NCBI GenBank assembly: GCA_002269645.1
Contig: NIVC01000632.1
Span: 124,001-188,000 of the forward strand
Length of the DNA: 64,000 bases
From: Macrostomum lignano
Taxonomy: Eukaryota
Direction: 5' to 3'
Under the pieces are notes generated by a model that saw only the letters and a list, made by a program, of their open reading frames with translations, was not told the origin of the DNA and did not search any database. Made by a program: the position numbers and the translations under genes. This document shows positions 6,684 to 15,660 of this stretch, one piece after another (within the stretch, counting starts at the first letter, position 1; every line of letters starts with the position of its first letter).

Positions 6684-9600
6684 TTAAACTCTCTCATCAG
6701 CTGTCGAAGAGCCAAGCTCTTTTTTATCTTCGTTGGCTGCTGGCCTGCTGGCCTCAGCTGACTGCTGATACAGCGAGGTCGCCGTCAGGCCTCGGTGAAA
6801 ACGGCGATGGACGGCGAGAGCGATGATGCGGGCAGCCAGCTCGATCAGCTCGCACACGGTCAGGACTGAGACGCCCGACCAGAGGCCGAGGGCGCCTGCG
6901 GCAGCGGGTTGAAATGTTTTGAGTGTTTACACGAAATCTAGCAAGTAAAAGCAGACTGCAAATTTATGTGGCTTCGAACCCCCAGGAACTTTGTCGCCAG
7001 AGCCAGACTCACCTCCCAGGTCTGCCATGAGGTTCTTGATGGTGTAGGACGGCTCCTCGGTGACATCCTGTCCAAAGTCGCTGGCCGCCTGCACCGTAAC
7101 CTTGACTAGTCGCCTTTCCACCATGCGCACCTCCTGATCAAAGGTCTGCATATGGAAGGCATCGTACACTCTCTTATTGAGCACAGAATAGTCGTAGGAC
7201 CTCAGGTAGGCATAGTAGAGGCTTGCAATGCCACGAGACCGCAGGAAGTTGTAGGGATAGGACCAGCCGCCCAGGCTGCCCATGAGGAATCTGTGCGCAT
7301 TCTCGGTGGTCAGGCCCGGCCACGGGTAGGCGGCCTGGCGCAGCGAGTAGGCGCGAGTCTCGCAGGGTGGCGGACACTCGGAGCGCCTGGCGTCCCGCTC
7401 GTGACGCGCCTGCAGGCGGATCTGCTCCCTGACGCACTGCTCCAACTTGTCCAGCTGCTCGGCGCCTCCGAAGCTGGCCGCCGGCTCGCCGAAACAGAAC
7501 GCTCGCCCGCTGGTCTTCAGCTCCACTGGGATGGGCAGGAAGGAGGGCAGGCAGCCGCACTGGTTGAGAAACTGGCGCACTTTGTAGGCGAAGATGCAGT
7601 CTTCCTGAGTGGCCGATTCGAATCGAACGGAGTCGCCAGTGGGACGGCTGAGCGTGAGGATGTTGGTTGAGTTGAAGAATTTTGTAGTTCAAAGTTATCT
7701 TAAAGATCAATCGCTTTGCTCAGTTCTGTACATACAGGTCAAAGCATTTGTTTATAATTTGGCTAACTTTTTAGCTATTTTAAACAAAAAAGAAAACTAA
7801 TACTAACTGACCCACGGTGGGCTCAGTACGCCTAGACCACCAGGCATACGAGTTAAGGTTTGCAATGCTACACACCTGCACCGCCACCGATCCGGTGCAG
7901 GAATGGTAGGAGAACTTTCTCAAAGCCGAGCATTTTTTAAAGGCAGCTCTAGGACTGCTAGGACTGGGGGCTCCCATCCGGGGTCTCGGCTTCTCTGTCT
8001 TGGCCGTGTTGGGAACGGGTTCTACCCGGAAATGCATCTGTGCGCATCAGACAGCTTTAGCAACGGCTCTGAGGAGCAGGTAACCTCTGAGCTTAACGGG
8101 TATGCGGCCAGTCCGTAGGCTCCGGTGACAGCCTCCTAGTCTCTCTCAAGGGGCCGAGTGTAGCACCGCGTTGATGGACCTTTAGCTGGGCTCTCAACCG
8201 GGAGTTTCTCGGTCCTATCTTTTGGCTGGCAGTTGGGCTTGGGTTTACAGCCCATTAGTCTCTCAGCTTGCCCACATCTACTTTTTGGCGATCTATTTAG
8301 TAACCAACGTACAACCACCGCGTCCCTTGATGCTGCTGGAACGCACTGGAACAAGTGGACATTTGCAGCACTGGAACTTGTTCTGGTGCCCTTGAGTCTG
8401 CCAGATCTCCACATCCAGGCCTGTATCAAGGTCTAAAGCATCGCTCGCGTCCAGGAATTAAGCCGACAGAACAATAGCGGAAAAACAGAGAAAAGCGGAA
8501 GCCGCCTCATCTGCCGCCTCTGAGTAGGGTGCCGGCAACTCTGCGAATGCCAGATCGGACTCCACGCATCGGCCAGAAGCGTCAGGTGCCGACGAAGGTC
8601 CCAACCCCTACCCCTGTTGTCACCACTCGGATTAAACGGGACAGGCTCACCTACTTCGGCCTAAACCCGGACCTTTCTAACGTTTTCAGGCCCGAGAATC
8701 TCTGCCAGCTCGTCCGCTACCTAAGAGCTACCGGGCGAGCGAACATCCACCTCCTGGACTCTCCGGAGGGGGACGACGCTGCTGGCACCAGCACCACAGA
8801 TTTTCATGCGCGACACCGCAGCACCAGCTGCCCGTGGTCGCCAGGAATTAGCGGAATGAGCGCCAACGCCTCCCCGCTGCATCCGGAACCCCCCTGCAGC
8901 TAAGCCATAGGTAGCTAAGGGATCAGACAGGAGAGACACTTGTTCAGTTTGTAGTTCAAAAGTCCAGAAGGTGAGAGATATTGTGATTTTAGTGCTACAA
9001 AAACTCACTATAAAATCATTTCTTTCACTCACGTGCCAGTCTCCTTCGCAGCCAAGATCGTCTTCAGAATTTCGATTTTATCAATCCAATTTGGTGTTGA
9101 GTACAGCATGGCCAGGTTGATTGAGGGTGTGCCTGCGCGAACGACGGACCAATTTTCGTAAGTAACTTGAAGAATTGGAAAGTAGGCGCACAGACAGGCC
9201 CTATGTCTACATCTAGAACTGATGAAGAAGAAGAAGAAGAATCTAGAACTGACTGCTCAAGCTTGTGACTCACAGCTCTTGGTTTTGCTTCAACTACTGA
9301 AAATTAATGTTTCTCTATGTACCTTAAGTCCTTTTGCTATGTGCAGTGTCTATGTAAAACCATGTGGTCATTGTCGTAAACTCAGATTCCACCGTTCTAA
9401 AGGCAAAACTGTTGCAATGGTGCACACTAGGACAGCTGCTGAATCACGTCAATCACCATGGCAGTCGAGCAACATATTCCCAGCTAGTGTTCCAGGTGGG
9501 CAGGGCGTAGCTGACCGCCGGCAGAGTCCGGGCGCACGGCTGGCCGGGGGGCTTCGGGTACCGGACGCTGCGGTCATAGCGCAGCTTCAGCTCCGCGTGC

Positions 9601-15600: not shown

Positions 15601-15660
15601 GGCGGTGGTGTAGCCGCAGAACTCATTCAGCAGGTGCCGGCTGGAGGCCGTTGTGGACAT
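6684..15660 (-). CDS. DEG/ENaC channel subunit, paralog 2, complete 11-exon model (~1042 aa), with kringle-like/WSC/kringle-like insertion in the ectodomain
   Basis: Exons (minus): 15171-15660, 14387-14731, 13137-13445, 12326-12487, 12027-12218, 11814-11934, 11632-11723, 10542-10903, 9457-9665, 7013-7647, 6684-6895. All are GT-AG with consistent phases, summing to 3129 nt (1042 aa + TAA). Motifs: TTAHGL; TM1; FPDVYFC; CRFAGRPC...[11 protein letters not shown]; VSPGQHAEL...[10 protein letters not shown]; thumb DCIFAY...CGCLP...CPPPCE; pre-TM2/TM2 [26 protein letters not shown]. Confidence 0.88.
8530..8760 (+). mobile_element. Possible degenerate 3' end of a non-LTR retrotransposon in DEG/ENaC intron 9
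   Basis: [10 protein letters not shown]...[14 protein letters not shown] resembles the C-terminal tail of I/R1-group LINE ORF2. The match is weak and recognised by eye only. Confidence 0.3.
9765..10255. repeat. (TTAGA)n pentanucleotide microsatellite in intron
   Basis: Direct tandem repeat with occasional CTAGA/TTATA variants. Confidence 0.95.
10956..11215 (+). mobile_element. tRNA-derived SINE, family B (copy 2, head partly deleted)
   Basis: GTGTCCCTGAGCAAGACGCTTAACTCTGCATTGCTTCAGTTCACCCAGCTGTAAAATGGG core and tail are shared with 17478-17775. Confidence 0.75.
11632..12218 (-). other. Second kringle-like domain of DEG/ENaC paralog 2 (exons 5-7)
   Basis: Six Cys in kringle order: YDCLN...RYTGFKRES...LCMNW...HSYCRPV...SPVCAY...NTCELDTC. 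Loops are longer than canonical. Confidence 0.65.
12500..13120. repeat. (ACAG)n tetranucleotide microsatellite filling intron 3
   Basis: Direct tandem repeat; the source of the spurious SVCL/QTDR ORFs. Confidence 0.97.
13137..13445 (-). other. WSC domain (exon 3 of DEG/ENaC paralog 2)
   Basis: SVGCLPF...[28 protein letters not shown]...[16 protein letters not shown]...MSVF matches the WSC pattern (xxGC, MTxxxCxxxC, G-Y-xxxGL, CxC, CxxxCPGNxxxxCG, SVY). Confidence 0.82.
13532..14340. repeat. 21-bp minisatellite (ACTAATCTCACTGCCTTAACA)n in intron 2
   Basis: About 38 tandem units with variants; the source of the TNLTALT and VRLVAKA ORFs. Confidence 0.95.
14780..15040. repeat. Polypurine (GAGAGG-type) low-complexity tract in intron 1
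   Basis: Almost pure G/A on the plus strand. Confidence 0.9.

Follow-up and report, generated by a model that had tools for sequence, protein, structure and literature searches.

The window analysed here, a stretch of 64,000 nucleotides (nt) from Macrostomum lignano (contig NIVC01000632.1 of assembly GCA_002269645.1, positions 124,001 to 188,000 of the forward strand), carries on its minus strand a gene (15660→6684) that is probably an intact DEG/ENaC-family subunit gene of a macrostomid-type flatworm, one member of a lineage-specific, tandemly duplicating subfamily with a binding-type module in the finger of the channel ectodomain. This overall assessment blends two others that differ in strength. 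The architecture itself, i.e. a DEG/ENaC channel whose finger houses a module made of kringle and WSC parts, very likely holds; a specific binding or tether mechanism is a tentative proposal, with rather less than an even chance of being right.

Translation of region 6600–15700 in the three minus-strand frames, followed by a listing of the phase-compatible GT/AG pairs, yielded one clean chain of 11 exons (15660–15171, 14731–14387, 13445–13137, 12487–12326, 12218–12027, 11934–11814, 11723–11632, 10903–10542, 9665–9457, 7647–7013 and 6895–6687, followed by the TAA stop codon at 6686–6684), in which every junction is GT-AG, in frame and stop-free. The donors are almost all of the GTGAG type and the acceptors are preceded by pyrimidine-rich tracts. 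The chain amounts to 3126 nt plus the stop codon, i.e. 3129 nt encoding 1042 amino acids (aa), and is identical in both figures to the model of the initial annotation, of which it is an independent reconstruction. Comparison with M. lignano paralogues, in particular with the one referred to below as P0001, suggests two amendments to this model. First, exon 2 probably starts at 14668 rather than at 14731, because exon 2 of P0001 opens four residues before the first Cys of the module; acceptor 14668 reads ccacctccag/CG, and the alternative acceptor 14731, which gives the 1042-aa version, adds 21 residues found in no paralogue. Second, a 12th exon, at about 9200–9033, is probably lacking from the 11-exon model, which closes in frame all the same because the 168 nt of this candidate exon are a multiple of three. 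In P0001, a 96-nt phase 2-2 exon separates the counterparts of exons 9 and 10; segment 9033–9200, also in phase 2-2, is collinear with it and contains a W and a K that are invariant in all five aligned sequences. Its donor (CAC/gtgagt, at 9033) is firm and its acceptor (9200 or 9218) uncertain: with acceptor 9200 the exon is 72 nt longer than its M. lignano counterpart, and no canonical phase-compatible splice site gives it the short M. lignano length, the only usable acceptors being 9200, 9218 and 9250. The refined model contains 12 exons with intron phases 1,1,1,1,1,2,1,0,2,2,1 and encodes 1077 aa. Thus, the 11-exon chain was recovered as first described, but it likely lacks one in-frame exon, and its exon 2 acceptor has no counterpart among the paralogues.

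The identity of the host protein is clear. Exon 1 (15171–15660) starts with the ATG at 15660 and encodes the N-terminus, the HG motif (TTAHGLGRF), the first transmembrane segment (TM1), the FPDVYFC motif that follows it and some 80 finger residues; its phase-1 donor (AGG/gtgagc) agrees in position with that of the P0001 locus. After the module, the channel ectodomain resumes in exon 8 (10542–10903, starting with RDRVGG) and continues in exon 9 (9457–9665, containing PPGQPC and ending at the phase-2 donor ATG/gtgatt), then in exon 10 (7013–7647, exon 11 in the refined model), which encodes the Cys-rich thumb and the palm up to the segment preceding the second transmembrane segment (TM2), ending with KNLMADLG. 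The last exon (6684–6895) provides TM2 with its G-x-S motif, the C-terminus and the TAA stop at 6686–6684. HG, FPDVYFC and the GxS of TM2 were read directly from the sequence; TM2 is the sole hydropathy peak above 1.4, TM1 being weaker. The best sequence matches in the Protein Data Bank (PDB) are FaNaC, ASIC5, ENaC subunits and ASIC1, and the FaNaC and ASIC5 alignments cover both ends of the protein, including aa 3–96 in exon 1. The DEG/ENaC scaffold claimed in the initial annotation is therefore borne out: all the motifs quoted there are present, and the Pfam run proposed there scores the ASC family (PF00858) at 152.2 bits against a cutoff of 23.6, in two stretches that flank the insert.

Exons 2–7 of the 11-exon model sum to 1221 nt, i.e. 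407 aa in frame, in agreement with the roughly 400 extra residues first reported for these exons (the module measures about 390–407 residues, depending on the model). The insert opens about 80 residues past FPDVYFC and closes about 35 residues ahead of CRFAGRPC, a position that we take to fall within the finger, going by the ASIC1 structures. Deletion of exons 2–7 keeps the reading frame and leaves, in the 12-exon model, a protein of 691 aa that still matches ASC with 148.6 bits; therefore, the extra material is a clean insertion into the finger region of a DEG/ENaC subunit. The finger left after removal of the module, about 110 residues between the anchors aligned with ASIC5 as compared to 68 in ASIC5 itself, appears by this alignment to be of normal size. 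Eleven N-x-S/T sequons are found in the 1077-aa product, six of them in the module, a distribution consistent with an extracellular location of the latter.

The most readily recognized component of the module is a WSC domain, encoded by exon 3 (13137–13445), a symmetric phase 1-1 exon of 309 nt that P0001 also possesses. The Pfam WSC profile (PF01822) scores 26.5 bits on aa 285–366 of the window protein, just below the cutoff of 27.8, and reaches 39.1 and 41.1 bits, above the cutoff, in the aligned paralogues P0001 and P0004, and 26.4 bits in another. When a profile of the insert was run with HMMER exhaustively over 1.84 billion representative sequences (the best 150 were listed out of 3351 hits with E ≤ 1e-3), its central part recovered the WSC family at large. 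A phmmer search of the PDB with the WSC exon of the window gene alone returned a chance match only. Altogether, these sequence comparisons indicate that the WSC domain of the insert is genuine. The position of this domain, as judged from the sequence, differs from the kringle–WSC–kringle order first proposed: the WSC exon appears to be nested within the first kringle-like unit (K1), between its third and fourth Cys. More specifically, exon 2 (14387–14668, phase 1-1) encodes the N-terminal part of K1 with Cys1, Cys2 (CIGW) and Cys3 (CRQPPGLPL), exon 4 (12326–12487, phase 1-1) encodes its C-terminal part with Cys4 to Cys6 (GPYCFY to TYCNVPYC), and the alignment of the unspliced insert described below bridges the WSC domain, so that the layout is K1N–[WSC]–K1C–K2. 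The second kringle-like unit (K2) is distributed over exon 5 (12027–12218, phase 1-1; DC, RYTG-x10-CMNW, Cys1 and Cys2), exon 6 (11814–11934, phase 1-2; NHSYCRP, Cys3) and exon 7 (11632–11723, phase 2-1; SPVCAYV to TCELDTC, Cys4 to Cys6), where the module ends.

The kringle parentage of the two flanking units relies on several concordant comparisons. All six Cys residues of each unit are invariant in an alignment of five proteins, which also share C-x5-G-x-E-Y-x-G, C-x2-W, C-R-x-P-x-G-L-P-L, G-P-Y-C-F and Y-C-x-[IV]-P-x-C in K1, and D-C, Y-T-G-x10-C-x2-W, Y/F-C-R, P-x-C and C-x4-C in K2. The canonical spacings Y-x-G-x10-C-x2-W, Cys4–Cys5 (12–13 residues) and Cys5–Cys6 (four residues) are kept, and K1 aligns to K2 with every Cys in register. 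Using hhalign, we compared each unit with 13 canonical kringles (all 13 confirmed as such by Pfam): K1, with the WSC domain excised, gave 93.5% with P = 2.3e-7 and a score of 42.3, and K2 gave 86.7% with P = 4.4e-6 and a score of 36.2, as compared to maxima of 21.7 (K1) and 15.7 (K2) among sixty column-shuffled controls and to 8–12 for reversed controls. A permissive hhalign run on the unspliced insert yielded two kringle alignments, both full-length (columns 2–78, P about 3e-4 each) and with the Cys in register; the first runs from CR-x5-G-E-E-Y to C-R-x-P-G, then opens a single long gap that corresponds to the whole WSC domain and resumes with G-P-Y-C-F up to Y-C-N-V-P-Y-C, and the second is K2. 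Profile searches of PDB sequences gave kringle chains in 18 of the 22 matches for K2 (tPA K2, prothrombin, plasminogen K4, apo(a)) and the plasminogen and neurotrypsin kringles for K1, with individual E-values of 0.09–8, each non-significant alone. On the strength of these alignments, we consider that the insert comprises two kringle-derived domains with enlarged loops, the first of which hosts the nested WSC domain. The two kringles and the WSC domain proposed in the initial annotation are thus retained on the basis of hhalign and Cys order, but the kringles are divergent and lie below the Pfam threshold. Note that K1 of the window protein contains a seventh Cys found in no paralogue (RGDCGRL; aa 401 of the refined model, exon 4, at about 12380), and that the candidate exon at 9033–9200 would bring two further Cys residues (ACLCAYF); these extra Cys may be unpaired or engaged in lineage-specific disulfides.

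Structure prediction was performed with the inserts of M. lignano paralogues and single-exon translations from the window as alignment rows. A first AlphaFold model, of the P0001 insert and based on four alignment rows, was set aside (pLDDT 47.7), its Foldseek matches (RNA polymerase, CsgG) being noise. With 13 rows, pLDDT rose to 62.7 and pTM was 0.53, confidence being good in the Cys2–Cys3 region of K1 and in much of K2. The top two Foldseek matches of this model among 350,542 PDB chains are the Kremen1 ectodomain (5FWS and 5FWV, about 216 aligned columns). We take this match, obtained with a predicted model, as a hint rather than as proof. The likeness to Kremen first pointed out is thus weakly upheld: among solved structures, the fold search ranks Kremen first, at E = 0.046.

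The M. lignano protein BOX15_Mlig007204g1 (PAA82974.1, 1052 aa) and its paralogues (among them PAA86857.1, BOX15_Mlig006056g1, BOX15_Mlig034226g1 and A0A1I8IV52) share with the window gene the whole architecture, the exon boundaries, the phases and the Cys of the module, for an overall identity of 32–43% to the window protein. A word-index search retrieved four such proteins, all from M. lignano, 31–41% identical and with precomputed Pfam WSC and ASC matches; further word-index searches, seeded with the alignment of the insert or with that of the full-length proteins, brought no additions, and the window gene's own protein was absent from the protein collections searched. Eight proteins extend past the WSC part among the HMMER matches listed (P0001, P0003, P0004, P0005, P0007, P0009, P0016 and P0058), all from M. 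lignano. The composite module occurs in no other taxon among the best 150 of the 3351 hits, a list in which a DEG/ENaC protein with a single WSC domain from elsewhere would not show. The other listed hits match the WSC part only, mostly repeatedly per protein; the few that were looked up are multi-WSC proteins of diplonemids, oysters and fungi. Altogether, about eight M. lignano paralogue clusters carry the module, with entries in GenBank (PAA) and UniProt (A0A1I8) that both give the joined architecture, and at the genomic locus of P0001 (GCA_002269645.1) the exon boundaries and phases are identical to those of the window gene. Identity is 30–40% in the module as compared to 32–43% overall, and K1 reaches 40–55%; by this measure, module and channel core are conserved to the same degree. 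One of the eight, P0016 (A0A1I8HMR1, 495 aa), seems to lack the first part of K1 and the K1 C-terminal part while retaining the WSC domain and K2, which reflects either mis-assembly of the model or natural variation of the module.

The subfamily is also represented a second time in the window. A tandem paralogue, gene B, lies at 1–2599 on the same strand: its exon 1 extends from an ATG at 2599 to about 2110, ends with a phase-1 donor and is 64% identical to that of P0001, and its exon 2 starts near position 77 with the start of kringle 1, LPLNVCRITPDGEEYRGN, and runs off the window edge. This second copy points to tandem duplication of the whole design. The initial annotation knew of no such architecture in a DEG/ENaC channel. 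This statement stands for the literature, since our searches found no paper in which WSC or kringle domains are associated with DEG/ENaC channels, or in which the M. lignano genes are named, but not for the public databases, where the roughly eight paralogues are deposited with ASC and WSC, under the automatic name 'WSC domain-containing protein' and with no kringle. What is new here is the kringle parts and the nested arrangement, the association of ASC with WSC being already visible in the automatic annotation of M. lignano. Three Macrostomum DEG/ENaC channels have been tested in oocytes (Dandamudi et al., PMC9234716). Two of them, considered here from their cDNAs (the third being Mlig041003.g1), were rejected as members of the subfamily: both cDNAs are of ordinary length, belong to another clade and lack the module.

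Solved DEG/ENaC channels (FaNaC 7YVB, ASIC5 9MKY, ENaC 6WTH, ASIC1) have in common with the window protein the ASC signature, the HG motif, two transmembrane segments, GxS and the Cys framework of the ectodomain, whereas the solved or described members lack kringle and WSC domains and the 390–407 or so extra finger residues. To our knowledge, the only well-known family that pairs a kringle with a WSC domain is that of the Kremen1/2 Wnt co-receptors (Kringle–WSC–CUB; PDB code: 5FWS). In Kremen, however, the WSC domain follows a complete kringle instead of being nested inside one, and the protein is a single-pass receptor with a CUB domain, while the window protein is a two-TM channel subunit with no Pfam CUB match. 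The GRIP region of ENaC and, in nematode degenerins (e.g. MEC-4), the extra Cys-rich and regulatory domains are likewise inserts in the variable, gating-tuning part of the ectodomain, but they are unrelated in sequence and fold and, unlike the window module, are not recognizable exon-shuffled mobile modules. Finally, yeast Wsc1 and polycystin-1, both implicated in the sensing of mechanical stress, are membrane proteins that, like the window protein, expose a WSC domain to the outside of the cell; they are different membrane proteins, and mechanosensing is not carried over from them to the window channel.

The following scheme would account for these features. A Cys-rich module would have entered the finger of the ectodomain by exon shuffling, its first part being a divergent kringle with a complete WSC domain hosted in the Cys3–Cys4 loop on its own phase 1-1 exon, and its second part a divergent kringle with enlarged loops. 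Phase-1 introns bound the whole module, and the module as a whole, as well as exons 2, 3, 4 and 5 singly, is in phase 1-1, which is the classical signature of exon shuffling. The module would then bind a partner outside the cell (a glycan, a protein or the matrix), and this binding, or a mechanical pull through the module, may couple to gating. Such a role is suggested by the fact that the finger receives gating stimuli and that WSC and kringle modules are binding domains: in ASICs, ENaC and the peptide-gated members, the finger and its neighboring domains take stimuli such as protons, peptides and proteases, and WSC domains occur in Kremen, polycystin-1 and the yeast cell-wall stress sensors. 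Matrix tethering is a leading, though unproven, model for the mechanosensitive members of the family (PMC10148893). By analogy, a ligand- or matrix-binding, gating-modulating role of the module is plausible.

Several points weigh against the proposed architecture and function, and they feed distinct alternatives. The functional step of the scheme is pure inference, and it must be weighed against the possibility that the module is real but serves an intrinsic regulatory or assembly function, for instance as an autoinhibitory plug comparable to the GRIP region of ENaC or as a subunit-sorting, endoplasmic reticulum quality-control or clustering domain. The location of the module is broadly that of other inserts of the finger that are specific to one lineage, as in ENaC, and its presence in many paralogues could serve heteromer recognition. 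In addition, in the hhalign alignments, the positions that correspond to N-P-D-x-D in canonical kringles are occupied by P-P-G-L-P in K1 and by P-V-K-V-V in K2, both devoid of acidic residues. Acidic residues at these positions form the lysine-binding pocket of plasminogen kringles, so lysine binding is not to be assumed, and the general property of kringles invoked in the initial annotation cannot be transferred to this module. Conversely, by inspection, no conserved basic (furin-type) motif is found in the module across paralogues, and WSC domains elsewhere are binding domains. We regard an intrinsic role as unlikely, while giving it a better chance than the alternatives considered below.

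A second alternative is that the Cys-rich segments flanking the WSC domain belong to a lineage-specific Cys-rich fold, comparable to the extra Cys-rich domains of nematode degenerins, whose motifs resemble those of kringles by chance, the WSC domain being then the only recognizable component. In favor of it, the Pfam Kringle profile (PF00051) finds no match in the window protein at E ≤ 1, and its scores in the paralogues reach only 14.5–21.7 bits against a cutoff of 34.3; the PDB profile matches are individually non-significant; three of the five inter-Cys loops of K2 and two of those of K1 far exceed the canonical length; and the 13-row AlphaFold model is of moderate confidence overall, with the WSC domain and several loops below pLDDT 50, and displays two helices in the Cys2–Cys3 loop of K1 that are foreign to canonical kringles. 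The Kremen1 fold matches themselves (E = 0.046 and 0.092, TM about 0.2) are not significant. Against this, the sub-threshold Pfam hits of the paralogues fall in the right register (the N-terminal part of K2 on profile positions 4–39, the C-terminal part of K1 on 58–79), the hhalign P-values of 2e-7 and 4e-6 go with scores roughly double the highest obtained in 60 shuffles, the six Cys are in register in both full-length alignments, the three canonical spacings are preserved, kringle chains dominate the list of PDB matches and Kremen heads the fold matches. A chance resemblance is thus distinctly improbable, and we retain the kringle-derived assignment.

The third alternative questions whether the module belongs to the mature channel at all: exons 2–7 could form a nested or separate gene, or a cassette that is normally skipped, the mature protein being an ordinary DEG/ENaC subunit of about 635–690 aa. 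The window gene is known from genomic sequence alone, the phase-1 introns that bound the module and the phase 1-1 exons within it would allow the whole module or single exons to be skipped (exons 2, 3, 4 and 5 are each a multiple of three, so that skipping keeps the frame), and the module-less product still matches ASC. Yet, the strand, order and exon phases of the module equal those of M. lignano models that derive from transcripts: the GenBank models of this assembly were built on a transcriptome assembled with guidance from the genome (StringTie/TACO, along with a de novo transcriptome; PMC5730564), so the joined mRNA has RNA-level support in the paralogues. Moreover, the two separate sets of M. 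lignano entries (GenBank PAA and UniProt A0A1I8) give the joined architecture, and the module is conserved to the same extent as the channel core. No stand-alone protein with the module was found among the best 150 of the 3351 HMMER hits, the short hits being fragments, one of which, P0009, continues into channel sequence. A nested gene or skipped cassette is, accordingly, quite improbable. Finally, decay of this tandem-array copy into a pseudogene, as the tandem setting, the satellite-filled introns, the extra-exon acceptor lying off the M. lignano position and the non-conserved Cys of K1 could suggest, is hardly credible for a 3.2-kb coding sequence of 12 exons that shows no stop or frameshift, has canonical splice sites throughout and keeps every family-invariant residue.

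The surroundings of the gene are rich in repeats. Its introns are packed with micro- and minisatellites. The large satellites in and around the gene, several of which yield long spurious open reading frames (ORFs), consist of a 15-mer repeated 14 times just 3′ of the stop codon (6467–6673), (GATTA)97 (9764–10248), (ACAG)155 (12501–13121), a 21-mer repeated 39 times (13529–14340), (AGGGAG)35 (14773–14987) and a 21-mer repeated 14.5 times upstream of the ATG (16009–16313). Elsewhere in the window, three minus-strand ORFs match a Zic-type zinc finger (31757–32638), all three acyl-CoA dehydrogenase domains (35952–37109) and TTC39/Iml2 TPR (42651–43589), and are probably exons of larger, ordinary metazoan genes. 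On the plus strand, a 404-aa ORF (61435–62649) with reverse transcriptase and RNase H domains represents a fragment of a retrotransposon pol gene, while the long ORFs 23175–24146 and 25595–26488, which give weak Pentapeptide_4 and bacterial DUF2345 matches with no stretch individually significant, lie in a region of strong GC and AT skew and are probably translated simple repeats.

The window gene offers a clean case of exon shuffling into an ion-channel gene, with one module nested in another. Its interest for the DEG/ENaC family lies in the fact that the finger largely decides what opens these channels, and that the coupling of the mechanosensitive members to the matrix is a standing question (tether model: PMC10148893). 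Elsewhere in the family, any link to the matrix would run via separate proteins or glycans; binding modules built into the finger would constitute a natural experiment, in which the module can be removed or swapped. RNA interference and in situ methods exist for M. lignano and, since transgenesis is also available in this species (PMC5730564), the paralogues are directly testable. The boldest version of the proposal, a channel that carries its own extracellular anchor, in which the WSC domain embedded in K1 would attach directly to glycans or proteins of the matrix and make the protein a self-contained tethered mechano- or contact sensor, is a long shot. If true, it would be a rare instance of a mobile module nested in another within the gating domain of an ion channel, and it would provide, in Macrostomum, a genetically tractable test of the tether model of DEG/ENaC gating.

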